Below are positions 2 through 47,923 of a stretch of DNA of 64,000 bases, piece by piece. The stretch lies in the IMG/VR virus record IMGVR_UViG_3300017971_000185, positions 186,001 to 250,000 of that record, one strand, 5' to 3'. A program made the translations under genes and the position numbers. The notes beneath the pieces are model-generated. The model was given only the letters and a program-made list of their open reading frames with translations, searched no databases and was not told the DNA's origin. The number at the start of each line of letters is the position of its first letter. Position 1 is the first letter of the stretch.

Positions 2-2098
2 GACAAGTCTGCCGTCAACACCCAGAAGCAGATCAAGAAGCTGCGCGAGAAGTATCCGATTTGGTCAAATCGCCCGGCGAACATGTGGTTCAACATCGGA
101 GCCACTGACCGGGATTTCCAAGACGGTGAGGCTCCCATTGCGCTTGGCCAACTCGGTCTCTACGTCAGCAACAACAAGGGCAGGCTCATTGCGCCGGGGA
201 AAGCATACGGTACTGCACAAGCTGCACCGAAAGATCTGGCTGAAGATTTCGAGCAGGAGATGGAGGGTGAGCCCCAGGTAAACACCCGAACACTGGCAGC
301 CGTGTATGGCGGCTACGAGTGGCTCAAGAACAACGAGGAGGAATTCAAGGGCGCGTTGGACATGGACGACGTGCTCATCTCCGCGAGTCGCTTGCTCATT
401 GAGGATCCTCGTGCGTTGGCCCAGCTACAAGACCGAATCAAGTGTCTTTTAATCGACGAAGCACAAGACCTGAACGCTGCGCAGCATCTCTTGTTCGGCC
501 TGATTGCTGGCTATGTCGATCCTGCTACGCAAGCGCCTCGCAAAGACGGGCAGATGACGGCGGATACGTTTGCCTTCATAGGCGACGACCGCCAGGCGAT
601 TTACGCCTTTCGCGGAGCGTTGCCCGATCTCTTCATCGAGAAGTCAGATCTGGTCGAAGGCGGCGAAGGGTTCAACACCAAGACGTTGGATCTGAATTAC
701 CGATCTGGTTCGGCCATTGTCGAGGCTGCCAACAACCTCATCAAGCACAACGAGAAGCAGATCCCGATGGTCTGCAAGGCCAACGTAGAGCGCAAAGGCA
801 CAGGTGCCATCCAGCAGGTGACTCTGAAGACGCTAGAGGATTGTGCTGTCTACGCGGCAGAGCAGATCAAGGCGGCTACACAAGAGCTAGAGGATGTGAA
901 GGACCCCGTCACCCAAGCGGCGAGCCCGTCAGACTTCGGTGTTGCGGTGCGCACGAACAAGGAAGCGTACCAGTACGGCATCGAGATGATCAAACGAGGG
1001 ATTCCGTTCAAGTCGAAGTACAACTTCTTCAAGGGTCCCGCAGTCAAGGCTCTGCTCAACCTGATGACGCTTGCCTCGACTGGCAAGAAGGATGTGCGGC
1101 GCATCAACCGGGCCGTGGTCGAGGGAGTCCGCGCACCTGATTGGGGACTTAGCGAAAAGACTCTCAAGACGCGTCTCACCGAGAAGGCAGGACGCGGGGC
1201 GGACTGGTTTGATTGGCTCAGCAAGGGCGGTTGGAAGGAGATCTATCGAGATCGCGAGATGCAGGAACGGCTGCACAAGTATGTGGGATTCTTGAAGGAG
1301 GTCTTTGATCTCAAGGAGACCGACAGCGACGGGGTTCTCAACTTCCTGACCAACTATCCCGGTCCCGAGGGCAACTTGATCGATGCGTTGGTCGAGAGAG
1401 TCAAGCAGTCGAAAGACGACATGGAGGACTTCGGGAAGCAGTACGAGGACACATCCGAGGAGAACCTACGCGAGTACGCCTCGGCTCCAATCCAGGTGCT
1501 TTTTGAGATCACCAAGACCTATCCCAAGCTGGACGATGCCGTTGCGTATCTCAACGAGCTTTACGAGATGAACGAGCGGCTTTCGAGCACGGACGATCCG
1601 ACTCGTAAGGACTACAAGGAAGATCTCGAAGCCGTGCAGATTGACACGGTGCATGGCTGGAAGGGTCTGGAGTGCAAGAATCTCTTTGTTCCGATGTGGG
1701 AGGGTCGCAGAGGCGGTTTCCCACACGGCAAAGCCGAGGACATGACTTCGGAGCGTCGCCTGGCCTACGTCGCCATCACGCGCGGTGAGGATAGCGTCAC
1801 TATCCTGCGTCCCGAGTTTGATGGCGCTGTCGATCGTGAGGGTCGGCCGATTCCCACTCGCCAGTCTCGTTTCGTGACCGAGGCGTGCATTCAGGACGTG
1901 CCGGCCTATGGGGAGTCGGTTGTCGTGGAAGATCCCGAGGAGCAGGGGCGGACGGCGCAGGAGAAGGAAGCGAAATTCCGTTTCACGGATGACGAGCTAG
2001 ACGCCTACCTCAACGACGATCTCGAATACCTAGAGGGCCTGAGATCCGATGAAGAACCCGAGCGCCGGCTTGAGGCCGAATGGAAGTTTCTGCCATGA
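2..2098 (+). CDS. UvrD/Rep-family superfamily 1A helicase, 5'-truncated by the window edge
   Basis: The frame is open from position 2. SF1 motifs are visible: LLIDEAQD (II), GDDRQAIYAFRG (III), LDLNYRS (IV), TVHGWKGLE (V), ERRLAYVAITRG (VI). Walker A must lie upstream of the window. Confidence 0.93.
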   Translation, partial: DKSAVNTQKQIKKLREKYPIWSNRPANMWFNIGATDRDFQDGEAPIALGQLGLYVSNNKGRLIAPGKAYGTAQAAPKDLAEDFEQEMEGEPQVNTRTLAAVYGGYEWLKNNEEEFKGALDMDDVLISASRLLIEDPRALAQLQDRIKCLLIDEAQDLNAAQHLLFGLIAGYVDPATQAPRKDGQMTADTFAFIGDDRQAIYAFRGALPDLFIEKSDLVEGGEGFNTKTLDLNYRSGSAIVEAANNLIKHNEKQIPMVCKANVERKGTGAIQQVTLKTLEDCAVYAAEQIKAATQELEDVKDPVTQAASPSDFGVAVRTNKEAYQYGIEMIKRGIPFKSKYNFFKGPAVKALLNLMTLASTGKKDVRRINRAVVEGVRAPDWGLSEKTLKTRLTEKAGRGADWFDWLSKGGWKEIYRDREMQERLHKYVGFLKEVFDLKETDSDGVLNFLTNYPGPEGNLIDALVERVKQSKDDMEDFGKQYEDTSEENLREYASAPIQVLFEITKTYPKLDDAVAYLNELYEMNERLSSTDDPTRKDYKEDLEAVQIDTVHGWKGLECKNLFVPMWEGRRGGFPHGKAEDMTSERRLAYVAITRGEDSVTILRPEFDGAVDREGRPIPTRQSRFVTEACIQDVPAYGESVVVEDPEEQGRTAQEKEAKFRFTDDELDAYLNDDLEYLEGLRSDEEPERRLEAEWKFLP

Positions 2099-2925
2099 CG
2101 ACACACGAGGCAGCAGGCGGCACCTACGTCGAGATCTCTCGTGAGGAGTTTGAGGATTGGCTCAACAAGACGGGCTACAAGTGGGAGCGTGATCGATCCA
2201 AGGCCGGAATCTATGTCGTCAAGTTGTCGCCCAACGTAGGTATCCACATCTCATCTTCCATCGGCTCCAGAGACACGGGGCTCGCGAGGGGACGAGCCTC
2301 GGTCAAGATGAAGCTGGTCAGCCTCATCACGGGCTACACGCTCAACAAGAAGGTTCAAGGCCGCGATCACTTCAAGCGTACCAAAGGATGGCGACAGACC
2401 TGGAAGAAGGGTCTGGACGACTTCAAGGGCGCCTACATGAAGGCGAAGGACTGGTACGACAAGCTGGCGACCATCGAGAGCCGGGACGAGTACAAGGACG
2501 AGTGGCTCGGGAAGATCGAGGAGATCGGCGGCTGGGAAACCGATCGGATGCTCAAGGACTTCCACGACAAGCTGGAGAAGGGGAGCGTTCTTTCAGACAA
2601 GCAAGAAGCGGCGATTGAGCGCACCAAAGGACGGGGTGCTGGGCCTGGGAGAGCACCCCAAGAAGCGCCAAATGAGGAGTTGCTTGCCAAGCTGCGGGAG
2701 CTTTGGAAGCGAGCCAAGGCAGCCGCCGATCGCGGGGATCGGGACGGTGAGTGGACGATGGGCTTCGCCCAGAACATGGGCGAGAAGTTGAAGAAGGGGT
2801 GGCGTCTCACGCCCAATGAGAAACGGAAAATCGATGAGAAGCTCAAGAGGTATCGCGTCGCCTCGATGCTCGCGGAAGGTGCGATCCAACGCGTAGCTTC
2901 TCAGTTTCTCGCTAGGAGCCTGTAG
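2095..2925 (+). CDS. Hypothetical protein with C-terminal RVASQFL tag
   Basis: ATG at 2095 overlaps the helicase TGA (ATGA). Lys-rich globular sequence ending AIQRVASQFLARSL. Confidence 0.75.
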   Translation: MTTHEAAGGTYVEISREEFEDWLNKTGYKWERDRSKAGIYVVKLSPNVGIHISSSIGSRDTGLARGRASVKMKLVSLITGYTLNKKVQGRDHFKRTKGWRQTWKKGLDDFKGAYMKAKDWYDKLATIESRDEYKDEWLGKIEEIGGWETDRMLKDFHDKLEKGSVLSDKQEAAIERTKGRGAGPGRAPQEAPNEELLAKLRELWKRAKAAADRGDRDGEWTMGFAQNMGEKLKKGWRLTPNEKRKIDEKLKRYRVASMLAEGAIQRVASQFLARSL

Positions 2926-6601: not shown

Positions 6602-6619
6602 GCAAGGAGCACACAGGCC

Positions 6620-14895: not shown

Positions 14896-14901
14896 GTAGC
14901 C

Positions 14902-20773: not shown

Positions 20774-20787
20774 TAATTTTCCTATGG
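20774..20787 (+). promoter_or_regulatory. Candidate late promoter motif TRA-N4-SYTATGG
   Basis: TAATTTTCCTATGG 40 nt before the 1505-aa fibre gene. Similar motifs occur at 33376, 34141, 37003 and 58932(-). Confidence 0.45.
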
Positions 20788-20827
20788 GCTAGCCCTCAGT
20801 GAGCCTTCGCGGGCTTTCGGAGAGCCT

Positions 20828-23800: not shown

Positions 23801-25345
23801 GGCGCGGTTGGGGGAGCCCTTAATCTGACTTCAGGCGGCGCGAGTGCGAGTTATACGGGCACGATCAACATTGATGTTCCGGCACAGTCTGCATCAGGCA
23901 GAGGCACGGGTGACATCAACATAACCATTGGAGACACTGCCTCCAATTACGGCTCGAATCCTTCGGGCGACATCAGTCTCACGGCAGGCGATCATACGGG
24001 CACGACGGGAACCGCTCAGGCTTCCAGCATCTTTCTCACAGCCGGGGATCATGCGGGAAATGAGAACAATGCGCCACCGGGCGATATCACCCTGAGCGCA
24101 GGAGATCAAACCGGAAGTGGTCGGGGTGCTGCTGGCGGCATCTACATTTGGGCTGGAGACAAGACAGGCGGCAGCCACAGTACTACGGCGGGTGGTCAGG
24201 TAGACATCGATGCTGGCGAGGGCAGTGGGGTAGGCCCAGGAGGGGCCGTCAGCATCACTGGCGGTTTAGCTGGCTCAACTGGAACCGGCGGCGGAGTTGA
24301 CATTGATGCAGGAGGATCTGGTACGGGAGCGACAGGTACGGGGGGAACGGTTGCCATCGATGGTGGGACCTGTAATGCGACGAATGGCGCAGGAGGCCCC
24401 GTCACCATCACGTCCGGTGCCGGTGCGGGGACGGGGAATGCTGGAGCCCTTGCGCTTAGCGGCAATGACGGAGGAGCCACGTCGGGTACAGGTGGAGATG
24501 CATCTCTGGGCGGCGGTGAAGGCGGCGGCACGGGTAGGGGAGGCAACCTTTCTCTTTTCTCGGGAACGGGTGGTGCGAACGGTGCGGGCGGGACGGTGTC
24601 GATCAACGCCGGGAGTGGCGGAGCTTCCGCGGGAGCATCGGGGACGATCACGATTTCCGGTGGCGATGGAGGCTCGGCGACAGTTGCAGGGGGAGCCGTT
24701 ACCTTTGAAGGAGGGGCTGGTAACACGACCGGAGCAGGGGGTCTTGCAACGGTTCAAGGAGGCACAGCAGGAGCTTCGGGGAATGGCGGCAGCGTAGCGA
24801 TTACGGCGCAAGATGGTGCTACGAATGGGGACGGTGGCAGTGTCACTGCGACCGCTGGTGGGGGTGCTGGGACCGGTGCCGATGGGAATGTCTCTGCCTT
24901 CGCGGACGACGACGGGTCCTTCCAGCATCGCACGCAGACGACGGGGTTCGCTGGAACGCAGTGCGACCACAAGACACTCGCGCTTCAAGCCTCTACGTCT
25001 GGCACGACTGTGTTAGCCGTGCTCGGGGTTCTGAGCACGGACGGCTTGAACATGAAATTCGACGTAAAATGTACGGGTGTCCGCGACTCCAACGACTCCG
25101 ATATCATCTCGATTTTCGCTGTGCAGACGGCGTATCGGGTTGGCGGTACGGTGTTTCTCTTGACGGCTCATGTCGATCCGACTTCGGCTCCCGGCAAGCA
25201 GACGAATGGTACGATTCCCTGGACGAACATCCAACTGGCCATCAACGGAGACAACATTGAGCTTCAAGCCACGGCCACGGCTGCCACGGGCGACTGGAAT
25301 TTCTCGATAGAGTGGACGCGACAGCTTGGCGGCTACTCCTCGTAA
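20828..25345 (+). CDS. Fibre-like virion protein with two LamG/concanavalin-A-like domains (1505 aa)
   Basis: Two copies of QFYLDAGDRNSYxGSGxTxTD...GGT..AWVRA..NEW.....TYD..LYING..WxGxI.....DR/TxLSxDxxRQxY (about 21300-21960 and 22540-23200), Gly-rich repeats and two knob motifs. Confidence 0.82.
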   Translation: MAQTPFRQPGKDLEVTDGNVITGADDSQGGDLTLEGGTSSSGNNDAGDVVIRPGLPNGSGARGIVNVTNNGGADTDPILQLTSETGANVEDSRFFVGTRDPHTNVTGNPGDVYITHNGTSSTVSVNTGAGDANTTWTDLAGGGTGGADPGIEGVLWEDIQFYLDAGDRNSYPGSGSTITDLIASKSCTLYFVTITDSHINFNGVSSYLDTGTLSAALVNLFETGGTVAAWVRAESDGGGNAGRVVSTTGSADTKGWYLDVNDESSGLVRFRFEQNRGTTDTVYTTFRTVPINEWAHVVITYDGSDPATKFPIAYINGELVSWDSETAGSGAITSDSGEILFIGNRWGAARTWDGDIDLFQLWDRVLSADEVRQLYRVTGEDRFRPSLLGDAASTSTGDAPDVEIKAGPGGSTSGAGGGIALTAGTTTAGSGGGITITAQDGTSGAGDVILNSGTTSSSGDGGIISLRPGVGAGTNDGYVDIDPDWTGDADPLLQFTVTGSNVDNNTQIFTGNRNPDGFVTGECGSLYLRGNTGSSTLYVNTSGASPGSTWTEIGAGGSGASAGIEGVIWGNNQFYLDAGDRNSYAGSGNTWTDIVGSRAATMTNQTITDGHIIWNASTTTATFTSDSSIEDIWNGGGTLIAWVRADSFGESSVGRIASTANAGNTIGWYAGVTSASGNTWKLYFRQNFDNTDGEWRTTSTVNLNEWLFFAITYDSSSASNEPTLYINTVLDTTDEITNPIGDYGSESGADLDIGRAGDGSGTWGGAIEIVMLYDTELSDDAIRQIYSVTGQDRLRPSLMGAPTTDASRPPQPIQIIAADGGATASDGGAVEISSGASTTGAGGAVSVTGGASEGGTTGGDISITGGDVASTNYSAGDVTIKGGDLDYSSAISPNTGGDVTLESGSYSGTGSAQPGGITIKTGTGGTNSAAAPDLLLQVTSYAGSSALGDIILQGGDNTGTGAAGGIQILAGDASGDPGGGVTITAGDGTGVGAVGGALNLTSGGASASYTGTINIDVPAQSASGRGTGDINITIGDTASNYGSNPSGDISLTAGDHTGTTGTAQASSIFLTAGDHAGNENNAPPGDITLSAGDQTGSGRGAAGGIYIWAGDKTGGSHSTTAGGQVDIDAGEGSGVGPGGAVSITGGLAGSTGTGGGVDIDAGGSGTGATGTGGTVAIDGGTCNATNGAGGPVTITSGAGAGTGNAGALALSGNDGGATSGTGGDASLGGGEGGGTGRGGNLSLFSGTGGANGAGGTVSINAGSGGASAGASGTITISGGDGGSATVAGGAVTFEGGAGNTTGAGGLATVQGGTAGASGNGGSVAITAQDGATNGDGGSVTATAGGGAGTGADGNVSAFADDDGSFQHRTQTTGFAGTQCDHKTLALQASTSGTTVLAVLGVLSTDGLNMKFDVKCTGVRDSNDSDIISIFAVQTAYRVGGTVFLLTAHVDPTSAPGKQTNGTIPWTNIQLAINGDNIELQATATAATGDWNFSIEWTRQLGGYSS

Positions 25346-35663: not shown

Positions 35664-35893
35664 GCCGCGCAGCTAGCGCAGCCGGTCTCGTTGGGGCGTT
35701 TAGGGTACCCAACGTGTAACGGCCCCGGACTAAGGGCATGAGCACCCGAGTATGCACTCTTGAGCGCTGCTGCCACCATCCACGCGTTTGCCCTGCCTGC
35801 CGTTTGATCCGTGCCGTTTTTGGCGAAAGGCGCGGTTCCGTTGGTGGTTCCAAAGATCCGCGGAAGGGGCGAAAGGGGGTAGAAGATGGAGAC

Positions 35894-36256
35894 GTGTCCG
35901 CCGACCGCTTCATCTACTTCAAGAAGGGCACGACGCCGCCCACGAAGGACGAGATCGAGTCCCTTCTGCGTAACTACTTCGGCGCCGCCGCGACGGAGAT
36001 CGAGTGGAGGAGCGACCGCTTCTACGTCACTCTCCACGGACACCCATCTTTCCCCTTCGCAGAGATCGCACCCGATGTCCCAAACCCGTACAAGGGAGAG
36101 GATGAGCGGGAGCGGTGGATCGAGGTCTGGCTCGACCGGAAGGACGGCACGGTCGACGTGATGACGCGGCACATGGACCACTACACGGGCGCGCTGGCCA
36201 CCGATCTCGCGCGGACCATCGCCCGCTACTGGCGCGGCCGTCTGGAGGACGACTAG
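35894..36256 (+). CDS. Hypothetical protein (start probably GTG 35894)
   Basis: MSADRFIYF... with strong GC3 coding bias. The 5' extension in the track looks non-coding. Confidence 0.55.
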   Translation: MSADRFIYFKKGTTPPTKDEIESLLRNYFGAAATEIEWRSDRFYVTLHGHPSFPFAEIAPDVPNPYKGEDERERWIEVWLDRKDGTVDVMTRHMDHYTGALATDLARTIARYWRGRLEDD

Positions 36257-36531: not shown

Positions 36532-36984
36532 ATGCGGCGAGTCGTCGTTGAGAGCCCCTTCCGCACCACGGACATCAAGGTAGCTGGGCACACAATCACG
36601 ATCAAAGAGGATGACAACGTAGCGTATGCTCGGGCTTGCTTGCATGACTGCCTTCAGCGAGGCGAGTCGCCGTACGCGAGCCATCTGTTGTACACGCAGC
36701 CTGGCGTTCTTGACGATTCCGTGCCAGAGGAACGAGCGAAGGGAATCGAGGCTGGCCTGGAGTGGAAGCGGTCAGCCGATGCCTCGATTGTCTACTGCGA
36801 TCGAGGGGTCACGGCCGGGATGATTCTGGGAATCCAGCTTTCCGAGAAGATTGGCCAGCCCGTCGAGTATCGTCAATTGGGCGGCCAGTGGGCGGTCATG
36901 GAGATCGCAGCCATGAGCCTGGACGAGCTACTGGACGAGTTGAAGGTACTCGCGCATACCACGCATGGCTCTGAGAGCGCCTGA
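36532..36984 (+). CDS. Phage protein of nucleoside-deoxyribosyltransferase-like fold
   Basis: VVVESPF...YARAC..DCL.RGE.PYASHLLYTQPGVLDD..P.ER..GI.AG..W....VY.D.G...GM..GI, a widespread phage family recognised from memory. Confidence 0.65.
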   Translation: MRRVVVESPFRTTDIKVAGHTITIKEDDNVAYARACLHDCLQRGESPYASHLLYTQPGVLDDSVPEERAKGIEAGLEWKRSADASIVYCDRGVTAGMILGIQLSEKIGQPVEYRQLGGQWAVMEIAAMSLDELLDELKVLAHTTHGSESA

Positions 36985-37033: not shown

Positions 37034-37759
37034 ATGGAACGCGTAGGCATAGGCCCTTACAGGCCCAAGAAGCGCAAGCGGCAGCGTAGGCAGCGGGGAC
37101 AGGCCAAGCAGAAGGCCAAGATGAGCTACCGCAAGCGCAAGGGTGTCCTCAAACAGAAGGCCAAGATTCGCTATCGCCAGGTACGCAAGTCGCCTGCGTT
37201 CAAGCGAAAGAAGCGCATCTACCGGAAATTCCGCACGCGCCACAGGCGGCTCGGGACGACGGAAGAGATTATGATGCATCCGGCCGTCGAGTTTATGATG
37301 ACCCTAGACGGCGAGCGTGTCGTCGCGGGACATATCACGGGAGTCGTTGCTGACACGTGGCAAGTCGAGTACGCACTTGAGGATGGCACGATCGGTTCCA
37401 TGGACATCGATGACTTCCTCGATCAAGCAGCGTTCTTCGATGACGGCGACATCGAGTTGTTGTTTCTGATTCTCGATGAGGCTTCTTCGGTGGAAGACGA
37501 CGGCGATGAGGATGTGACCGTCTTCGAGTTTGAACCTCCCGCTGAGCCATCGGCTGAGAGAGTCGTCTTGGCCTACCAAGAGCGTCACGCCTTCAACAAG
37601 GAGTCTCCGCCCGACTTGCTCGCGCAGCTTGTGAAGGTTCTCGACAAGGCGAGCACTCAGGCTGAAGGCGATGGGCGTAAAGGACTACGAGATGCCGTGG
37701 GTCGAGTCAAGGGCATCGCCAAGATCGTGGACTCCGCCTGGACGCATCGGAGGGAGTAG
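37034..37759 (+). CDS. Bipartite protein: Lys/Arg-rich N-terminus, acidic middle, tag AERVVLAY
   Basis: The first 75 aa are dominated by K/R. The D/E-rich domain follows. Confidence 0.7.
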   Translation: MERVGIGPYRPKKRKRQRRQRGQAKQKAKMSYRKRKGVLKQKAKIRYRQVRKSPAFKRKKRIYRKFRTRHRRLGTTEEIMMHPAVEFMMTLDGERVVAGHITGVVADTWQVEYALEDGTIGSMDIDDFLDQAAFFDDGDIELLFLILDEASSVEDDGDEDVTVFEFEPPAEPSAERVVLAYQERHAFNKESPPDLLAQLVKVLDKASTQAEGDGRKGLRDAVGRVKGIAKIVDSAWTHRRE

Positions 37760-37762
37760 GTT

Positions 37763-38002
37763 GTGGCGCTGCCTGCTGACGTTCGGCGGCTCTTAGCTGA
37801 GGTCGAGCGTCGGCGTCAGGCGAGACTGGAGCGTATTCGCTTCCAGAACAACAACCGTCAGTATGGTCGCTCGATCTACGGAGACTTCACCTACTATCCG
37901 AGTCAGATCGAGCCAGAGCACCATCTCAACCGGGGCATCTTGGGGCTAGACAAGATTCTCAGCGGGGTTACTCCGTGGCCTCGTTTCCCGACAATCCCAT
38001 GA
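37763..38002 (+). CDS. Small hypothetical protein
   Basis: GTG start after GGGAG. Stop overlaps the next ATG. Confidence 0.55.
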   Translation: MALPADVRRLLAEVERRRQARLERIRFQNNNRQYGRSIYGDFTYYPSQIEPEHHLNRGILGLDKILSGVTPWPRFPTIP

Positions 38003-38136
38003 GCGCGAGCGCACAACGAGTTGCTTCCCGATACCTGCAAGATGCTCGTGTGGATCACTACGAGGTCGAGAAGTGGCTTGAGGAGGCTGGGGTGAAACCG
38101 GAAATCGCTGCTCCGTCCAAGACGGACGGCCAATGA
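37999..38136 (+). CDS. 45-aa protein beginning with tag MSASAQRVASRYL
   Basis: Read by eye. ATGA overlaps at both ends. Confidence 0.65.
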   Translation: MSASAQRVASRYLQDARVDHYEVEKWLEEAGVKPEIAAPSKTDGQ

Positions 38137-38384
38137 CGCTGATGGAGCAGGGAAAGAGGGCATCCATGAAGCGAACAGCAATCGTTAAGAAGCATCCCGA
38201 ACGCGGGGTTTGGTGCCTATTCGATTCTGAGGGTAAGAAGGCGCTCAACTGTTTCAAGAATCGGTACAAGGACAAGAAGCCGCCTCAAGAGGCTATCGAG
38301 CGGGCAGAGCGCATCGTGCAATTCTACAAACACCAGGCTAAGGACATGGCGGTTCGGGTCGCAGCGAGATGGCGGGGCGAATGA
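38133..38384 (+). CDS. Small protein with phage head-associated-type motif and C-terminal RVAARW tag
   Basis: IVKK....WCLF...GKK..CF......AxERxVQFYKH resembles a short motif seen in phage head-morphogenesis genes (recalled). Confidence 0.6.
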   Translation: MTLMEQGKRASMKRTAIVKKHPERGVWCLFDSEGKKALNCFKNRYKDKKPPQEAIERAERIVQFYKHQAKDMAVRVAARWRGE

Positions 38385-38810
38385 CGGCGTCAGCACAGCG
38401 CGTGGCACATGCTCATCTTCTCCGCACGGGAGCCAAGGCTCTCAGCGGTAACGCGATTCGGTTGGAAGCAAGACATCAAGAAGGAGGCTGACCAGATCAC
38501 GAGAGAGATTCGCGATGGGTTTGTCAGGAAGAACACGATGAAGCTGAGTGCCATCGTGACCGGGAAAGGCAACCTGAAGAACATCGAAGTCCTGAGTTGG
38601 GCACGTAGCAACTTTGAAGGCGATATGCTGTTCACGTTCAAGGACGGATCGAGTTTCGAGGTACGCAACAAGACCGTGACCAAGATGTCGGTCAAGGGCC
38701 GGTGGTTCTCGCAGTACCCGACGACGTTCCACAAGGTAGTCATGCCGGACGGCAAGAAGATGCCTTCTCCGTCTGAGAAGCGCATGGTCCAGGTATTCGC
38801 GGCAGTGTGA
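38381..38810 (+). pseudogene. Frame-disrupted gene: tag-bearing start in one frame, conserved body in +1 frame
   Basis: ATG 38381 (ATGA overlap) gives MTASAQRVAHAHLLRTGAK, stop at 38491. The +1 frame (38409-38810) carries IRDGFVRKN..KGNLK..FEGD..F.F.DGS.F.V.N..FSQYPTTFH.VV.PDG. Confidence 0.55.
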
Positions 38811-41593
38811 TGGGTCGGCCGAAGTACATCGGGATCTTTCTCACGCCTCAGAGTAGGCGGGCGCTCCTGCGCACCTATCCGCCCGTCCATCCCACTGTCT
38901 ACGCCGATCACGTCACGGTGATCTACGATCCCACCGATGCCGACTTGGAGAAGGTCGAATTGGGAGAGATCGTCACGGTCAAGCCGGTAGCTCATCTGGA
39001 GGACGAAAAGGCCCAGGTGTTGAGGGTGAGCATTCCGTCCTACCTGGCTCGGCTCACCAACCGGGTGCCGCACATCACAATCTCTACGGCTCGCGGTGTT
39101 GCTCCCGTGTATGCGGGCGAGCTAGCCAAGTCGCACCACACCATGATCGCCCCGAAGCCAGGCAACTACACGGGCATCGTGGACGTGGACAAGCGTAGCC
39201 ATCCGGTGCGAACGAGGATGTTCCCGCTGGCCGCTGCTCCCAAGCACTACAAGATCGATCAGGGCGACGTTCGCAAGAAGACGCGCCGTGACAAGAAGCA
39301 GGAGCTAGAGGAGGCGAAAGACCTTGGTTTCTATTCGTACACGGTGATGAAGGTCGTTCCCATCAAGCAGGTCAAGACTCCGCCGGTCTGGAACCAAGGG
39401 CGTATCGACAGGATCAAGAAGGGGCTCGCGTCTGGGAAAGCCTTTCCGCCCATCTCTCTTGCGGGGAAGCGTCCTCCCTATGAGATCAGTGACGGCATCC
39501 ATCGGACCAACGCGAGTATCGACGCTGGCTACACGCACATCCCAGCGTACTTCACGGTGCTCGTAGAGCGCCCCGATCTCTACGAAGAGCCCGAGAAGGA
39601 GAAGCCCAAGCTACGGCCAGGTACTTGGGTCAAGATGCGCGCGTCTCGGGACGGTTTCGATTGGGCGGTTGTGATCGAGTACGTGGGTCCTCGCGTGTGG
39701 AAGGGAGTCAAGCGTCACTTGTACGGTCTCGTAGCGGGCGATACGAACAAGTCCGACTTCATCGGAGACTGGATGGACTCCGAGTTTGATCCCGTGCGGG
39801 AAGGACAAGTACCGAGGAAGGTGCGTGAGACGATTCTGGCAGACCCGTTTGCTGATCATCTTCCGCAGCGACGTGTTGCTGCTCGCCATCTCATCGCTCG
39901 TGACTATTTCGAGATAGGCGACATCATCTTGTACGGGAAGTACAAGAACAAAAAAGCACGGATTGTGGCGTGGGGCAAGGACCACAAGGGAAACCCCACT
40001 GTCGAGATTGAGCCCATCCCCAAGGGCCGCAAGAAGAACAAGACCCTCGGCCTGTTCCGCATCTGGCACGCGCTCCCGCCAGAGGAGCGGAAGAAGGAAG
40101 CGCAGGTTCGGACGGCGGAATTTTCTCCCAATTGGGATTGGCCCAACGTCCTGAAGAATGTGGCCATCTTCAACCAAATCCACAAGACGGTGAAGGGATG
40201 GACGCGCCTGAGCGACAAGGACCGAGTACCGGCGCTCCAGAAAGAAAAGCCGTTCATCGGACAACTGAAGAAGGATGTCGCGGGCGGAACCTTCCCTGGT
40301 CAATGGGAAGCAGGTTTGGCTGAGTGGCTCTATCAGTGGTGGGGATTCGAGTGCCCCAAGAAAGGCACTTCTGATCTGCTTCATCATGAGCTTTCGGTTC
40401 TGTATCGTCATGTTGCCATCGAGCCCAACAACTATTTACTCAAGAAGGATGTCGAAAATACAGCACGAGTGTTAGACACGTACTCCAAGGAGGTCAACGA
40501 CTGTCTCAAGCAAGCCGGGCCAGCGCGTCTGACCTACTCGGGGTTCAAGGTCTGGAATCCGCAGCGCATGCCCGACAAGATGATGCGCAAGCTGTTGAGC
40601 GGCGTCGATCACATCATGGCGATCTTCCGCAAACGAGGGATGGAGAAGGCGCTCACGAAAGGCGTCAAGGACATCCTCGTTCGCAAGTGGACTAGCAACG
40701 ATGGAAAGTATGTTGCCTGGTACTTCTCCCGTGAGCGCCGCATCGTCCTGACCGATGCTGTTCTCAAACCCGGCGGTGGTCGGCTCATGGATCGCTGGAT
40801 CTCCGAAGTGTTCCTCCATGAGTTTGGGCATCATGTCCACATGACGTACCTCCATCCCAACGCTAAGAAGGAATGGGATGCCGGGTGGAGTCCTGTTGAG
40901 TCGGCACGGGAGAAGGTCGAGCAAGAATTCAAGATCACCGGGAAGGACCGAAGGCGGTTCTTCGATCTCATCGAACGGAATGATTGGAGTCCGTCGAAAG
41001 CGGCACGAAAGCTCAAGGGCTTGGACAAGCTACGGTTCATGGCGTGGCTGCGCAACCCTGGTTTGGGAGAGCCCTTGATTACACCTAAGATTGTTCGGTT
41101 GACGCGTCGAGGGAAGGACGTGTTTGATTTCTTGCGGGACCCAGAGGGGCATTGGCGTCAACAACACCCTGGAGACCTGCTCAGTCATCTCCAATATGAG
41201 TCGAAGGAGCAGCAGAGAGCGGAAGAGGATGCTTATGTGGCAAAGCAAGTAGCTCAGAAGCTCCGCCGCCTTCGCAACGATGTTTTGTCTCTCGATTGGG
41301 AAGGCGCAGACAAGATTCCCCGAGCGTTGCAAGACGAGATTCGCAAAGAGGACAAGAGCGTAGACGCTGCGATAGATGCTTTGGAAGTCCCCACGGATTA
41401 TGCGAGAACGAATGAGATGGAGGACTTTGCCGAGTCTTTTGTTGCCTTCGTGGCGAACCCGGCAAAGCTCTCGGACCAGGCCAAGTTCCGCATGCAGCGT
41501 GCTCTCAGCCTCTCCGGGCTCTACGGCAAGCCGATTATGAGGCTGGCTGAGCGGGTCGCTCAGACCTGGCGTCGAAGGCAGGCCGCAGCCTAG
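38807..41593 (+). CDS. Multidomain (polyvalent-type) protein: 2H phosphoesterase + ParB/Srx-like + SH3-like + HExxH zincin metallopeptidase
   Basis: HVT (ADHVTV) and HIT (VPHITI) 2H pair; PPISL..YEISDGIHR; VFLHEFGHHVH plus DYARTNEMEDFAESF. Tags RRVAARHL (internal) and ERVAQTW (C-terminal). Confidence 0.78.
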   Translation: MMGRPKYIGIFLTPQSRRALLRTYPPVHPTVYADHVTVIYDPTDADLEKVELGEIVTVKPVAHLEDEKAQVLRVSIPSYLARLTNRVPHITISTARGVAPVYAGELAKSHHTMIAPKPGNYTGIVDVDKRSHPVRTRMFPLAAAPKHYKIDQGDVRKKTRRDKKQELEEAKDLGFYSYTVMKVVPIKQVKTPPVWNQGRIDRIKKGLASGKAFPPISLAGKRPPYEISDGIHRTNASIDAGYTHIPAYFTVLVERPDLYEEPEKEKPKLRPGTWVKMRASRDGFDWAVVIEYVGPRVWKGVKRHLYGLVAGDTNKSDFIGDWMDSEFDPVREGQVPRKVRETILADPFADHLPQRRVAARHLIARDYFEIGDIILYGKYKNKKARIVAWGKDHKGNPTVEIEPIPKGRKKNKTLGLFRIWHALPPEERKKEAQVRTAEFSPNWDWPNVLKNVAIFNQIHKTVKGWTRLSDKDRVPALQKEKPFIGQLKKDVAGGTFPGQWEAGLAEWLYQWWGFECPKKGTSDLLHHELSVLYRHVAIEPNNYLLKKDVENTARVLDTYSKEVNDCLKQAGPARLTYSGFKVWNPQRMPDKMMRKLLSGVDHIMAIFRKRGMEKALTKGVKDILVRKWTSNDGKYVAWYFSRERRIVLTDAVLKPGGGRLMDRWISEVFLHEFGHHVHMTYLHPNAKKEWDAGWSPVESAREKVEQEFKITGKDRRRFFDLIERNDWSPSKAARKLKGLDKLRFMAWLRNPGLGEPLITPKIVRLTRRGKDVFDFLRDPEGHWRQQHPGDLLSHLQYESKEQQRAEEDAYVAKQVAQKLRRLRNDVLSLDWEGADKIPRALQDEIRKEDKSVDAAIDALEVPTDYARTNEMEDFAESFVAFVANPAKLSDQAKFRMQRALSLSGLYGKPIMRLAERVAQTWRRRQAAA

Positions 41594-41736: not shown

Positions 41737-41764
41737 ATGCACTTTTGGTAGATTCTGGCGTAGA
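41737..41764 (+). promoter_or_regulatory. 28-nt phage promoter motif, copy G
   Basis: ATGCACT-TTTGGTA-GATT-CTG-GCGTAGA, 10 nt before ATG 41775. Confidence 0.65.
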
Positions 41765-41774
41765 GGGCGTAGAG

Positions 41775-42914
41775 ATGAAGGTTCTCAAGCTACAGATCTT
41801 CCATGGCAACGAGATGAAGGAATGGCGCACGATCGAGGACGACGTGACCAAGATCGGGACGCTCCAGTCCTCGCACATCCAGCTTGAAGGGCTAGCGCGC
41901 ATGCACGCGGTGATCGAGCGCAGCACGGACACGTTCCGGCTCATCGATCTCGGCGGCGTGCCTCCGACTTTCGTCAATGGCGAGCAGATCAGGCAGGCCG
42001 AGATTCAGAATGGCGACATGATCCACTTCGGTCGAGAGGGTCCGTGGAGTATGCGCGCGACCATCGAGACAGCCGTCGAGGTTGACGTGGACCGCAAGCC
42101 GGAGGCCCCTGACTCTTTGTCACGGGATGAGCTTTTCGAGACTTTCGCCAACGCAGCCCAACGACGCAAGGAGCGAGAGGACAAGGAGGATATTCCAGAC
42201 GATGAGCTTTTTGATCATTACTATCGCAAGTACCAACGTCGTAAGGCTCAGGAGCAAGAGCGCGAGAAGGACTCGGGGCAAGAGAAGTTGTTTGAGAGCC
42301 TGTGCGAACAGATGGAGGAGCTTGTAGAGGAGCGCTCAGAAGACCAGAAGAATGACATTACACGGATGCTTACCCAGGTGAAGTCTCTGTGGAAGAGCAA
42401 GGATCCTGAAAGAAAGCAAGATCAGATCCGACGCCTTGAGGATATTATTCAGGCTCTCAAGCAAGACAGGCAAGAGAAGGAGCAGATGGCGCACGCTTTG
42501 ATCGATGCCACGAGCCAAATCATTGCGGAAGGCACGATGGAAGAGGCGTTCAAGATCTCCGAAGAAGAGGCGCTTGAGAAAGCCGCCGATCTCGTCATGG
42601 AGGTCAGTCAGTACAAGGATGCCCTCGGTCTCCTTCAGGTGTTTTCTGGGCCAAAAGAAGGCGGAGCAGGGGACAAGAAAGTCTTTCTCAAGGGGAAACA
42701 TCTCTTGGAGAAACAATTGTCGGGGGAGGTCGCTAGAAAGAGTCTGTTCTTGAGTCTCTACATCGCGCGGGCAGGCGGCTGGACGTGGGAGCAACAACAA
42801 AAGGAAATGCTGAAAGCGCGGCGTAACCTGACTGAGGAGGAGCTTCAAGTGCTTGAAAACCATCCCGCAGTCAAGAAGGTTTTTGAAGCCATGGAGAGGC
42901 AGAGCGGTAGCTAG
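41775..42914 (+). CDS. FHA-domain protein with acidic coiled-coil C-terminus
   Basis: TKIGTL.SSHIQL..LARMHAVI...LIDLG....TFVNG.....I.NGD.I.FG. Confidence 0.78.
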   Translation: MKVLKLQIFHGNEMKEWRTIEDDVTKIGTLQSSHIQLEGLARMHAVIERSTDTFRLIDLGGVPPTFVNGEQIRQAEIQNGDMIHFGREGPWSMRATIETAVEVDVDRKPEAPDSLSRDELFETFANAAQRRKEREDKEDIPDDELFDHYYRKYQRRKAQEQEREKDSGQEKLFESLCEQMEELVEERSEDQKNDITRMLTQVKSLWKSKDPERKQDQIRRLEDIIQALKQDRQEKEQMAHALIDATSQIIAEGTMEEAFKISEEEALEKAADLVMEVSQYKDALGLLQVFSGPKEGGAGDKKVFLKGKHLLEKQLSGEVARKSLFLSLYIARAGGWTWEQQQKEMLKARRNLTEEELQVLENHPAVKKVFEAMERQSGS

Positions 42915-42938: not shown

Positions 42939-43613
42939 ATGCTGAAGCCGCAGGACATCGTGCATGTAGGAGGGACGCTGACCGCCGCTAGCGTGTTGGC
43001 TGCCTACCACCAAGGAGTGTTTCCTTGGTTCTCGCACGATGGCAGCGACGTGCTTTGGTGGTCGCCAGATCCTCGATTCGTGCTCGACGTGAACGAGGTA
43101 CACAGAGGGCGCACCGTTCGGAAAGCGCTCAAGAAGCTCGACTTCACGATCGACGCTGAGTTTGACCAAGTGATACAGGAGTGTGCCGACAAGCGCTATG
43201 CAGCCAGGTCTGCGATGGGAACCGATCGGACCGACACTTGGATCACTCCCCGGATGTTGAAGGTGTACCGGAAGCTCTATCGAGAAGGCTACGCGCACAG
43301 CGTCGAGGCGTGGAAGGATGGCGATCTAGTAGGTGGTCTTTACGGTCTGTGCCTGGGCAACGTGTTCTTTGGCGAGTCCATGTTTGCGCACATGCCCAAT
43401 GCGTCCAAGGCGGCTCTTGTGTTCCTTTGCGATAAGCTGAAGGAAGCGGGTGTCGGAAGGATCGATTGTCAGATGGAGACTCCGCTGATGCGCTACATGG
43501 GAGCCAAATTTGTCAGTCGGGCGCAGTTTCGAGATGGTCTCTTGTTGGGCTTGCTCACCAAGCCCACGCTCCGAGGAAAGTGGTCTGTAGATGGGTTGCC
43601 AGACGCAGAGTGA
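42939..43613 (+). CDS. aat: Leucyl/phenylalanyl-tRNA--protein transferase
   Basis: LAAYHQGVFPW, WWSPDPR, F.QVI..CA, TWIT, AHSVEAW...LVGGLYG...G.VFFGESMF...NASKAAL, IDCQM.T. Lacks the usual short N-terminal extension. Confidence 0.95.
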   Translation: MLKPQDIVHVGGTLTAASVLAAYHQGVFPWFSHDGSDVLWWSPDPRFVLDVNEVHRGRTVRKALKKLDFTIDAEFDQVIQECADKRYAARSAMGTDRTDTWITPRMLKVYRKLYREGYAHSVEAWKDGDLVGGLYGLCLGNVFFGESMFAHMPNASKAALVFLCDKLKEAGVGRIDCQMETPLMRYMGAKFVSRAQFRDGLLLGLLTKPTLRGKWSVDGLPDAE

Positions 43614-46489: not shown

Positions 46490-46517
46490 ATGCACTTTTC
46501 CTTCGATTCCGCGTAGA
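46490..46517 (+). promoter_or_regulatory. 28-nt phage promoter motif, copy F (divergent from E)
   Basis: ATGCACT-TTTCCTT-CGAT-TCC-GCGTAGA. Confidence 0.62.
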
Positions 46518-46533
46518 CACGAAAGAGGGATTG

Positions 46534-46977
46534 GTGCGCAAACCGCACAAAGGCACCTTACGAGCACTCGCCAAACGATTCCGGGCTTGGCTCGTCACGC
46601 TTCCTCAGATCGCCTCTTTCGATGAGGATCTCTGTGGGGCGTGTGCGATTGCTTCGGATGGTCTGGCTCGCTTTCTTCGTAAAGAAGGTTTCGACGCTTG
46701 GTTTGTCGAGGGCCAGTACGTTCCTTGCGCCAACAGCACTCGGTCAGAGGACTTTTACGGTGCCGAGACCAACCATTGTTGGGTCGAGGTTGGTCGGAAG
46801 TGGATCGTGGACATCACTGCTAGGCAGTACAGTGGGCGATTCCCCGAGGTCTACATTGTGCCCACAGAGCATGAGGACTATCATAGATTCCGGCGAGGGC
46901 CGTATGCTCTTCGATGCGTGCGGCGGGAGTGGCCGAAAGACCACCATCCACTCGGTCGAAAGCTACGCATCAGGTAG
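46534..46977 (+). CDS. Papain/transglutaminase-like Cys-His-Asp protein
   Basis: LCGACAIAS ... NHCWVEV ... IVDITARQY. Start set at GTG 46534 after GAGGGA. Confidence 0.62.
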   Translation: MRKPHKGTLRALAKRFRAWLVTLPQIASFDEDLCGACAIASDGLARFLRKEGFDAWFVEGQYVPCANSTRSEDFYGAETNHCWVEVGRKWIVDITARQYSGRFPEVYIVPTEHEDYHRFRRGPYALRCVRREWPKDHHPLGRKLRIR

Positions 46978-46981
46978 GAGT

Positions 46982-47923
46982 ATGACTGAGATTTACATGA
47001 TGGCTGGCGTGCCGGGTTCGGGCAAGAGCACGGAAGTCAAGAAGTTGCCGCCGCACGTTTACCTGAGCCGGGACAAGGAAGGCGGCAAGGTTTTGAGCTT
47101 GCTTCCGAAAATGCATAAGGCGATTGCGGACGGGGCCGAGATCATCGTGCTCGACTGTACTTTCCTTTTGCCTGAGCACCGTGAGCCCTTTCTTCAAGCC
47201 GCGGAAAAGGCTCAGGTGCCGGTTCATCTCAAGTTTCTCGATGTCAGTAAGGAACAGGCTCAATTCAACTTGTGCTGGCGCATGTGCGAGCGCTACGGGC
47301 ACGTGCTGCGGTCCGAAGAGATGGACGAGTACAAGCACGATCCAAACATGTTCCCGCCGACTGTTCTGTTCGGATGGTTCAAGAAAATGGTGCGGCCTCA
47401 GTATGCTGAGGGTTTCGATTCGGTCGAGGTCATCAAGATCGGGCGCTGGCCTTTGCCTTCTGAATTCAAGAACAAGGCGTTCATCGTGGATTACGACGGG
47501 ACGGTACGGGAGACCAAGAGCGGAGAGATCTACCCGACTGATCCCTCCGACGTGCGAGCACTCCCACAGGCGGCTGAGAAACTCCAGAAGATAGCCAAGG
47601 AAGGAAGGCTGTTGCTTGGAGCGAGCAATCAGTCTGGTGTCGCCAAGGGTCTTCTGACCATGGAGACGGCCAGGGCATGTTTCGAGGAGGCCAATCGCCA
47701 GCTTGGCGTAGACATCGAGTATGCCTTCGACTACAGTCGGTCTGGGCCGATCACTTCCTGGCACCGAAAGCCCATGCCGGGAATCGGGGTAGACTTCATC
47801 TGGAAGCATCGGCTGGACCCGAGCCAGTGTGTTTTTGTGGGCGACATGACTTCGGACGAGACCTTCGCCCAGCGATGCGGTTTCCAGTTTGAGTGGGCAA
47901 AGGATTTCTTCGGACATGAATGA
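46982..47923 (+). CDS. Bifunctional polynucleotide 5'-kinase / 3'-phosphatase (P-loop kinase + HAD IIIA)
   Basis: MAGVPGSGKST (Walker A), VLDCT, and HAD motifs VDYDGT, SNQSGV, RKPMPG, FVGD..SD..FA. Confidence 0.88.
   Translation: MTEIYMMAGVPGSGKSTEVKKLPPHVYLSRDKEGGKVLSLLPKMHKAIADGAEIIVLDCTFLLPEHREPFLQAAEKAQVPVHLKFLDVSKEQAQFNLCWRMCERYGHVLRSEEMDEYKHDPNMFPPTVLFGWFKKMVRPQYAEGFDSVEVIKIGRWPLPSEFKNKAFIVDYDGTVRETKSGEIYPTDPSDVRALPQAAEKLQKIAKEGRLLLGASNQSGVAKGLLTMETARACFEEANRQLGVDIEYAFDYSRSGPITSWHRKPMPGIGVDFIWKHRLDPSQCVFVGDMTSDETFAQRCGFQFEWAKDFFGHE

Follow-up and report, generated by a model that had tools for sequence, protein, structure and literature searches.

The short peptide described here belongs to a known kind, that of peptides marking diverse proteins, and what is particular about it is its independence of position, its place on the modules of polyvalent proteins and its spread among huge phages seen only in metagenomes. 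It recurs in an operon of six open reading frames (ORFs) at positions 37034-41593 of the window, the 64,000-nt stretch analysed, which comprises bases 186,001-250,000 of a 497,194-bp viral contig (IMG/VR record IMGVR_UViG_3300017971_000185, here G000; 57.7 % G+C), and elsewhere in the same genome. This tag is conserved as a peptide, is strongly over-represented, sits at protein termini and in linkers, travels with domains as fusion, splitting or reshuffling rearranges them between related huge phages, and forms a free helix in the structural model. The explanation favoured here, which is tentative and falls a little short of probable, is that the operon encodes effector modules of the polyvalent type, each marked by a portable recognition helix of about 14 residues and gathered for common handling, most likely capsid loading and co-delivery.

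Sequence and placement of the tag

The tag spans about 14 residues with the consensus S-A-x-R-V-A-x-R-[Y/W/H]-L-x-R. Among 26 copies, the Ala at position +2 is invariant, and positions 0 and +1 are R/K (21 R and five K) and V in nearly all. Variability is confined to -1, +3 and +7, i.e. every fourth residue, a spacing that places it on a single stripe of a helix. Position -1 is occupied by K, Q, A, E or R, with no preference for E, and no fixed P1-like residue is conserved ahead of the core. At the nucleotide level, the N-termini MSASAQRVA and MTASAQRVA differ in six of their nine codons, including AGC versus TCA for Ser. Such synonymous differences among copies indicate that conservation acts on the peptide and not on a DNA repeat or element, and they rule out a DNA-level element as the explanation of the tag.

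Based on a 14-column matrix run over 487 gene calls of our own with a cut-off of ≥10 bits, the genome contains 23 sites, versus 1.3-3 in reversed or shuffled proteins, and 11 of the 23 were not seeds of the matrix. An independent matrix, trained on 20 tags outside the operon and applied to the 1,545 residues of the operon, detects six sites there at 9.6-26.2 bits, against an expectation of 0.02-0.05. Genome-wide, the copies number about 25-30. Within the operon, five of the six ORFs carry the tag, as a preliminary description of this DNA, made from the sequence alone, had stated, and the exception is the 79-aa ORF (Table 1).

Placement is mostly terminal or between domains, the rest of the copies lying inside giant ORFs. 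N-terminal copies begin 6-9 residues past the initiator Met (e.g. MPPSFKRVARRYL, MPPSAKRLAERFL, MADPKRVAARYL and MFSAAKIAKRYL), and C-terminal copies are found within 9-17 residues of the stop codon, ending a few residues before it. Pairs made of a C-terminal tag and the N-terminal tag of the next gene span gene boundaries (genome 30697/30698, window 38384/38381), and tandem tags occur in single ORFs (window 2854 and 2890, genome 456590 and 456629). The proteins so marked include a 189-aa papain-like peptidase (C39/C70-like) with a C-terminal tag and a 1,510-aa protein with one tag about 35 residues before a PolyA_pol/CCA-adding domain. The tag is modular, as the preliminary description had proposed, being borne by bodies as unrelated as PolyA_pol, 2H phosphoesterase, papain-like peptidase and small domains.

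The polyvalent protein and its relatives

The last gene of the operon encodes a 928-aa protein whose AlphaFold2 model (mean pLDDT, the model's own confidence score, 81) was combined with structure searches and motifs. Its N-terminal domain (model residues 1-130) belongs to the 2H phosphoesterase superfamily, having two H-x-T/S motifs within a CNPase/LigT-like fold; it aligns with the mouse CNPase catalytic domain (VIA-align Z 12.5; Foldseek E 1e-3) and shows a weak match to Pfam tRNA_lig_CPD (E 0.014, under the cut-off). The second domain has the fold and the DGxHR-type arginine motif of the ParB/sulfiredoxin superfamily, with VIA Z values of 8.4-9.9 to SerK, sulfiredoxin, SbnI and PadC and a weak match to a PHROG of ParB-like nucleases (E 0.012). 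Further on, a zincin metallopeptidase module, whose end motif is SLSGLYGKPIMRLA, resembles the catalytic domain of anthrax lethal factor (LF; 1yqy, VIA Z 10.9), a zinc metallopeptidase of Bacteroides (4l7a, 8.8) and PPEP-3 (9g0j, 8.5), Z values in a range that VIA calls meaningful only when well above background. It has an HExxH motif with a downstream Glu, and a fold-level similarity to gluzincins of the anthrax-LF/PPEP kind is likely, any peptidase activity being putative. The zincin matches no Pfam model at E≤0.1, MPTase models included, and a PDB sequence search with the 928-aa protein gave no match. Between the ParB-like and zincin parts, a small module of strands (aa 389-421) may, on our reading of its sequence and without a fold match, be SH3-like; the same module sits behind the tag that follows the zincin in homologs P0004 and P0013.

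Both tags of this protein are modelled as isolated helices in low-confidence linkers, packed into no domain, and the internal one is conserved in P0002, P0003 and P0007. The suggestion that the tag separates domains inside the 928-aa fusion therefore holds, since copies lie in inter-domain linkers here and in shuffled homologs as well. With at least two unrelated effector domains, a zincin component and a phage origin (relatives are on viral contigs of 200-435 kb), the 928-aa protein qualifies as a polyvalent protein, a class that combines 2H phosphoesterase, ParB-like and zincin domains and whose members, according to prediction, enter the host along with the DNA and undergo processing by their zincin (Iyer et al. 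2017, PMC5512222). It shares the domain repertoire and architecture of that class; the differences are that the modules here are also translated separately from coupled mini-genes and that the zincin lacks a Pfam match. The passages of PMC5512222 covered here contain no shared junction or terminal peptide, the word 'linker' being absent from the main text, and those searched in the same group's jumbo-phage survey mention no such peptide; no earlier description of the tag was found in the literature searched.

A 28-kb contig from another sample (L004) is syntenic with the window and shows how tags and domains have been rearranged. Its gene order is an amidase, a DUF7768 protein, a 242-aa protein, a 79-aa protein, the cassette, a 907-aa polyvalent protein and, further on, an FHA protein. 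The 242-aa protein is 58 % identical to the 241-aa protein of the window, and the two 79-aa proteins are 50 % identical. Between these and the polyvalent gene, the cassette encodes proteins of 659, 456, 150 and 451 aa in L004 and of 45, 83, 36 and 133 aa in the window, so that cargo varies while tags persist, as the preliminary description had led one to expect from synteny. Thus, the 456-aa protein has three tags (at its N-terminus, residue 296 and C-terminus), the 451-aa protein begins with MPASAKKVASAYLRGQ / MPASAKKVASAYLRGQRRVAAG, an N-terminal tag, and the 907-aa protein, which is without the ParB-like part, has SKRRVAARYLIARD between its 2H and SH3-like parts and a further copy at its C-terminus. 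The 83-aa protein of the window corresponds to residues 228-306 of the 456-aa protein (56 % identity, E 2e-29), where the matching domain is internal and ends exactly at the internal tag. The small tagless domain encoded in frame 0 (Table 1) corresponds to the last 107 residues of the 451-aa protein (64 % identity), and the 45-aa and 36-aa ORFs resemble only the tagged N-terminus of that protein. Since the window genes map as fragments onto L004 genes, the window cassette is a reduced derivative: single domain-plus-tag units have turned into separate, translationally coupled mini-genes, and one tag, that of the 36-aa ORF, has lost its domain by an out-of-frame junction. The 241-aa protein and its L004 ortholog share only the degenerate C-terminal variant (MAKTVARAWEQRNEA before the stop in L004), the internal SAERVVLAYQERHA not being conserved. 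Upstream of its polyvalent gene, a closer relative (P0002, 74-77 % identity) encodes a protein of at least 319 aa. Among orthologs of 40-77 % identity, the flanking linkers vary and the tag is conserved.

The tag extends well beyond this locus. A search of 1.84 billion representatives at E≤1e-3 yields 1,240 homologs of the zincin and ParB-like modules, and tags (one or more per protein, by the matrix of this genome) are present in 62 of the best 153. Altogether, these 153 contain 71 tags (14 N-terminal, 17 C-terminal and 40 internal) versus eight in reversed sequences. Most lie directly behind the zincin end (...SLSGLYGKPVMRLA-x-RVA-x-RYL) and are sometimes merged with it. Stand-alone ParB-like homologs of about 220 aa also exist, some with a terminal tag. 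An alignment-based scan located 17 loci on IMG/VR contigs of 6-435 kb, most of them >200 kb, unlike a single-sequence scan of viral contigs, which gave no match. The flavour of the tag differs by lineage, being I-A/S-L-R-V-A-A-R-Y in L024, L026 and L027 versus S-A-K/Q-R-V-A in G000, and a 402-kb relative has 10-12 tags versus 0-2 in controls. Large homologs fuse the zincin to topoisomerase IB or to PolyA_pol and 2H, or carry an intein; the cluster names of 10 homologs were uninformative. Topoisomerase IB is found next to or fused with the zincin in several relatives (L001 8749-9990, L003 1576-3675, P0017, P0035 and P0045), in L003 being fused to a 2H domain, and the intein of the zincin homolog P0034 contains a LAGLIDADG domain (aa 781-1168). 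Close to the polyvalent gene of L001, a 421-kb contig, there is a gene of Cas12f1-like or TnpB type (15445-17766, minus strand).

Docking, cutting or common descent

In the proposed mechanism, the operon would supply an RNA-end or cyclic-nucleotide 2H phosphoesterase, a ParB-like nuclease or NTPase, an LF/PPEP-like zincin and several small domains, and the tag would be a docking helix read by one common partner. Given that -1, +3 and +7 form one exposed stripe, the remainder of the helix would be engaged. Separately translated modules would each keep at least one copy and fusions would keep copies at their junctions, allowing the partner to gather unrelated counter-defence and take-over enzymes for common handling. 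This handling would consist in packing the enzymes into the capsid and delivering them along with the DNA, and copies at junctions may, in addition, tell the co-encoded zincin where to cut. Because of the polyvalent-protein context and the precedent of phage T4, capsid loading is the most economical purpose, and, by that analogy, the loading and co-injection of tagged proteins are plausible.

The capsid targeting sequence (CTS) of T4, present on IPI-III and Alt, occurs at the N-terminus only, and the prohead protease cuts it off behind an L/I-x-E motif. Diverse anti-defence proteins have nothing but this peptide in common, and it brings them into the prohead, to be injected along with the DNA (PMC3012670). 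The tag is likewise a short peptide common to otherwise unrelated proteins; however, it is also C-terminal and inter-domain, is unrelated in sequence and has no conserved Glu, so that neither the exclusively N-terminal position nor the L/I-x-E site of the CTS is seen, and packaging is here predicted. In phiKZ and SPN3US, the prohead-protease motif is S/A/G-x-E. Processing of head and ejection proteins has been described for SPN3US (PMC5694885, PMC7411985). Those cleavage motifs also recur in many head and ejection proteins of giant phages, often at domain boundaries, but their sequence is different, the S/A/G-x-E consensus of T4 gp21-like protease sites being absent from the tag, which is helical and whose copies at extreme termini misfit pure cleavage sites. 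The cargo-loading peptides of encapsulins and the encapsulation peptides of microcompartments are short and terminal and dock unrelated enzymes inside a shell, those of microcompartments being amphipathic helices. They resemble the tag in marking unrelated enzymes at either end, although their consensus is another one and the shell would here be the phage capsid or another hub; we know of no encapsulin or microcompartment shell genes in this phage. Nor, to our knowledge, do the Dar proteins of phage P1 (DarA, DarB, Hdf and DdrB) share a short motif. These are large anti-restriction proteins, one of them with ParB-like and zincin domains, that are loaded into the head (PMC5512222, PMC9024508), and a search of the INPHARED phage database revealed no sequence similarity to them.

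The chief rival explanation, which we consider unlikely, holds that the tag is mainly a proteolytic site for the co-encoded LF/PPEP-like zincin or for the tagged papain-like peptidase, with terminal copies left over from gene fission. The location of tags in inter-domain linkers, and in many homologs directly behind the conserved end motif of the zincin, is consistent with this, as is the fact that a papain-like peptidase is tagged here and another adjoins the homolog in L007. The zincin fold also resembles endopeptidases of short linear motifs, those of the LF/PPEP type being known to read such motifs, and processing of polyvalent proteins by their zincins was predicted by Iyer et al. (PMC5512222). 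However, the full motif is retained 6-9 residues from the Met or 9-17 from the stop, at the very tips of stand-alone proteins, where a cut would take off few residues and achieve little, and there is no conserved P1-like residue before the core. The helical periodicity over about 12 residues and the free helix of the model, unlike typical extended cleavage sites, also favour a helix over a mere cleavage site. Docking is further favoured by the fact that most modules translated on their own have one tag or more, and by tandem tags where two tagged units meet. Processing may well occur alongside docking, T4 being a case in which targeting and cleavage go together.

Less probable still is the explanation that dispenses with a trans partner, making the tag a generic boundary helix inherited with shuffled cassettes and kept by common descent and recombination between them. 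Cassette shuffling is indeed evident: the 83-aa domain and its tag stand alone here and are internal in L004, the SH3-like module comes before or after the zincin, and the ParB-like part is inserted or absent. Against this explanation, the peptide is kept while synonymous sites differ, which implies selection on the peptide; the bodies bearing it have neither sequence nor fold in common; and linkers vary around a conserved tag among the orthologs of 40-77 % identity. The lineage-specific flavour of the tag would be expected if the tag co-evolved with one partner, but copies related by descent could show it as well. A last alternative, that the tag is cut to expose an N-terminal Arg or Lys which the phage's Leu/Phe-tRNA-protein transferase (L/F-transferase) then modifies for N-degron turnover, is suggested by the R or K that always occupies position 0 and by the transferase gene two genes downstream of the operon, but it is very improbable, as that gene is absent at the syntenic site of L004 and its family (PF03588) is absent from five tag-bearing huge-phage relatives, one of them complete, so that tag and transferase do not co-occur.

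Several observations weigh against docking for capsid loading. Virion loading is argued from analogy with polyvalent proteins (PMC5512222) and with the T4 CTS (PMC3012670). No capsid, portal, protease or terminase family, among those tried, was found near the operon or in the genome; profile searches of the whole genome gave no match for Peptidase_S77, Phage_capsid, Phage_capsid_4, Terminase_6N, AAA_2 or CLP_protease, the blank for Peptidase_S77 (PF03420) being uninformative because every control genome was blank too. Two proteins of the same operon, the 79-aa protein and the 90/133-aa domain protein, are tagless, and internal copies are unnecessary for targeting as such. By the matrix of this genome, about half of the more distant homologs are without a tag, as are 36 of 51 stand-alone-size homologs at ≥8 bits; many tagless homologs show diverged forms (e.g. 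IVASRYL and RVVYRYL), and the label may thus be either not obligatory or diverged past recognition. Taking both sides together, the preliminary description was largely right in what it observed, its modular label is supported, and its proposal of virion-internal cargo is plausible by analogy with T4. A bolder version of the docking explanation, in which a clade of huge phages uses the helix S-A-x-R-V-A-x-R-Y-L-x-R as a general loading code, with proteins bearing it at either end binding a single receptor, entering the capsid and being injected, is doubtful.

The operon, its surroundings and the possible use of the tag

The six ORFs of the operon (starting at 37034, 37763, 37999, 38133, 38381 and 38807) were described at the outset as linked by a 3-nt gap or by ATGA/GTGA overlaps, and the junctions proved to be so: the TAG stop of 37034-37759 is followed by 3 nt and the GTG at 37763, ATGA overlaps occur at 37999, 38133 and 38381, and a GTGA overlap occurs at 38807 (another possible start being the ATG at 38810). 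In a crude gene set of our own, 4-nt overlaps account for 12 %, and junctions of ≤5 nt for 23 %, of adjacent same-strand pairs genome-wide; the longest run of tight junctions in the genome is seven (one case) and the runner-up three. A chain of five is unusual, without being unique. Between 36400 and 42000, there are no promoter-like sites, and the seven terminator-like sites (4.7 expected from shuffles) are not clearly above chance.

Table 1. Positions of the operon genes, their domains and tags, and other genes in the window
Feature	Position (nt)	Strand	Remarks
283-aa protein	2074..2925	+	two tandem C-terminal tags, RYRVASMLAEGAIQRVASQFLARSL then stop; just after a UvrD-like helicase ORF entering from upstream of the window
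2,549-aa giant ORF	6602-14251	+	
1,657-aa giant ORF	14896-19869	+	
1,522-aa giant ORF	20777-25345	+	two Laminin_G_3 stretches; one PHROG of unknown function
172-aa protein	35738-36256	+	ends LARTIARYWRGRLEDD then stop
DUF7768 protein	36532-36984	+	
241-aa protein	37034..37759	+	N-terminal 75 aa with 35 K+R and 1 D+E; next 100 aa acidic
Internal tag-like SAERVVLAYQERHA of 241-aa protein	37550-37591	+	aa 173-186; scored by independent matrix
Degenerate C-terminal tag of 241-aa protein	37715-37756	+	IAKIVDSAWTHRRE then stop
79-aa protein	37763..38002	+	tagless; GTG start preceded by GGAGGGAG
45-aa mini-protein	37999..38136	+	starts MSASAQRVASRYLQ
N-terminal tag SAQRVASRYLQDAR of 45-aa mini-protein	38008-38049	+	26.2 bits, independent matrix
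83-aa protein	38133..38384	+	one small domain and C-terminal tag, MAVRVAARWRGE then stop
C-terminal tag of 83-aa protein	38346-38381	+	
36-aa ORF	38381..38491	+	starts MTASAQRVAHAHLL; hardly more than the tag
Tag SAQRVAHAHLLRTG of 36-aa ORF	38390-38431	+	
Frame-0 ORF	38409..38810	+	small tagless domain; 133 aa from ATG 38409 or 90 aa from ATG 38538
928-aa polyvalent protein	38807..41593	+	AlphaFold2 model, structure searches, motifs
2H phosphoesterase domain	38807..39205	+	aa 1-133; HVTV at aa 35, HITI at aa 89
ParB/sulfiredoxin-like domain and beta-rich extension	39254..39856	+	aa 150-350; DGIHR at aa 229
Internal tag PQRRVAARHLIARD	39863..39904	+	aa 353-366; modelled helix 353-367, low pLDDT, between domains
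Small beta module GDIILYGKYKNKK...TVEIEP	39971..40069	+	strands aa 389-421, low confidence
Helical bundle and zincin metallopeptidase	40139..41521	+	aa 445-570 and aa 571-905; HEFGH aa 671-675, NEMEDFAE aa 869-876
C-terminal tag LAERVAQTWRRRQA	41543..41584	+	aa 913-926; modelled helix 910-927 behind low-confidence linker 907-915; protein ends LAERVAQTWRRRQAAA then stop
FHA-domain protein	41745-42914	+	E 4e-11
Leu/Phe-tRNA-protein transferase	42939-43613	+	Pfam Leu_Phe_trans in the gene table of an identical contig
Polynucleotide kinase-phosphatase-like protein	46517-47923	+	AAA_33, PNK3P and HAD

Pfam and PHROGs searches with the six ORFs and their neighbours gave nearly no matches, and the 'head-associated-type motif' reported earlier was not confirmed, Pfam and PHROGs being blank for the operon ORFs; a protein-mode search of INPHARED phage records gave no match, and the ESM Atlas offered no usable lead for the 241-aa protein. 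The 45-aa ORF is predicted as a gene in three further assemblies, whereas the 36-aa ORF is predicted by none of three gene callers. For the latter, the preliminary description had placed the tag and a conserved domain in one ORF starting at 38381, which is wrong for this genome, where the ORF ends at 38491 and the domain is encoded in frame 0 (38409/38538-38810), but right for the ancestral or relative form seen in the 451-aa protein of L004. The frame-0 ORF, which has the GTGA overlap with the 928-aa gene, is predicted as 133 or 90 aa in other assemblies, the ATG at 38538 having the better Shine-Dalgarno sequence (AGGAAG upstream) of its two starts. The entire 36-aa ORF overlaps open frame 0, and a +1 shift anywhere in 38385-38491 would join tag to domain; the RNA fold around 38381/38409 is not unusual (z 0.48). 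The arrangement is identical in four assemblies from different samples, which rules out an assembly error.

Contigs near-identical to G000 (completeness 94 % by CheckV), up to 528 kb in length, occur in many sediment and seawater metagenomes; the sequencing runs with the phage are DNA metagenomes only, from sediment and seawater, with no RNA run among them. Directly downstream of the operon lies the FHA-domain protein, with a 32 % identical ortholog downstream in L004, followed by the L/F-transferase. Upstream, the DUF7768 protein resembles PHROG families that are nucleoside 2-deoxyribosyltransferase-like and is kept just upstream of the operon in L004, and the 172-aa protein ends like the degenerate C-terminal tag of the 241/242-aa proteins, an end that may represent a second tag flavour. 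Among the three giant ORFs, those of 2,549 and 1,657 aa match nothing in Pfam or PHROGs. Taken with the 2H and CCA-adding domains, the polynucleotide kinase-phosphatase-like protein suggests a theme of RNA repair in the genome. Genes for J-domain (DnaJ) proteins are found close to tagged or polyvalent genes, both in this genome (G000:C1:252643-252783, minus strand, and 297121-297264, plus strand) and in three related contigs (including L004 13691-14725 and L007 9686-10090), and one of them adjoins a tagged 468-aa gene (genome 253280-254686).

The 2017 prediction that polyvalent proteins are packaged, injected and cut left open how their pieces are recognized, a question on which the tag offers a testable handle. 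As a short, conserved and position-independent label of module boundaries, common in metagenomic zincin and ParB-like homologs, it would define the functional units of giant ORFs that are otherwise unannotatable and would direct attention to a receptor or a protease. As a loading signal, should it prove to be one, it could also be used to pack cargo into large capsids; and, should the general loading code hold, a polyvalent protein would consist of cargo units that each have their own address, and attaching the tag to foreign cargo could get it loaded. For the phages themselves, the label would nominate about 25-30 proteins per genome as early effectors that are handled together, among them 2H phosphoesterases, a CCA-adding enzyme, ParB-like nucleases and peptidases and, in relatives, topoisomerase IB.

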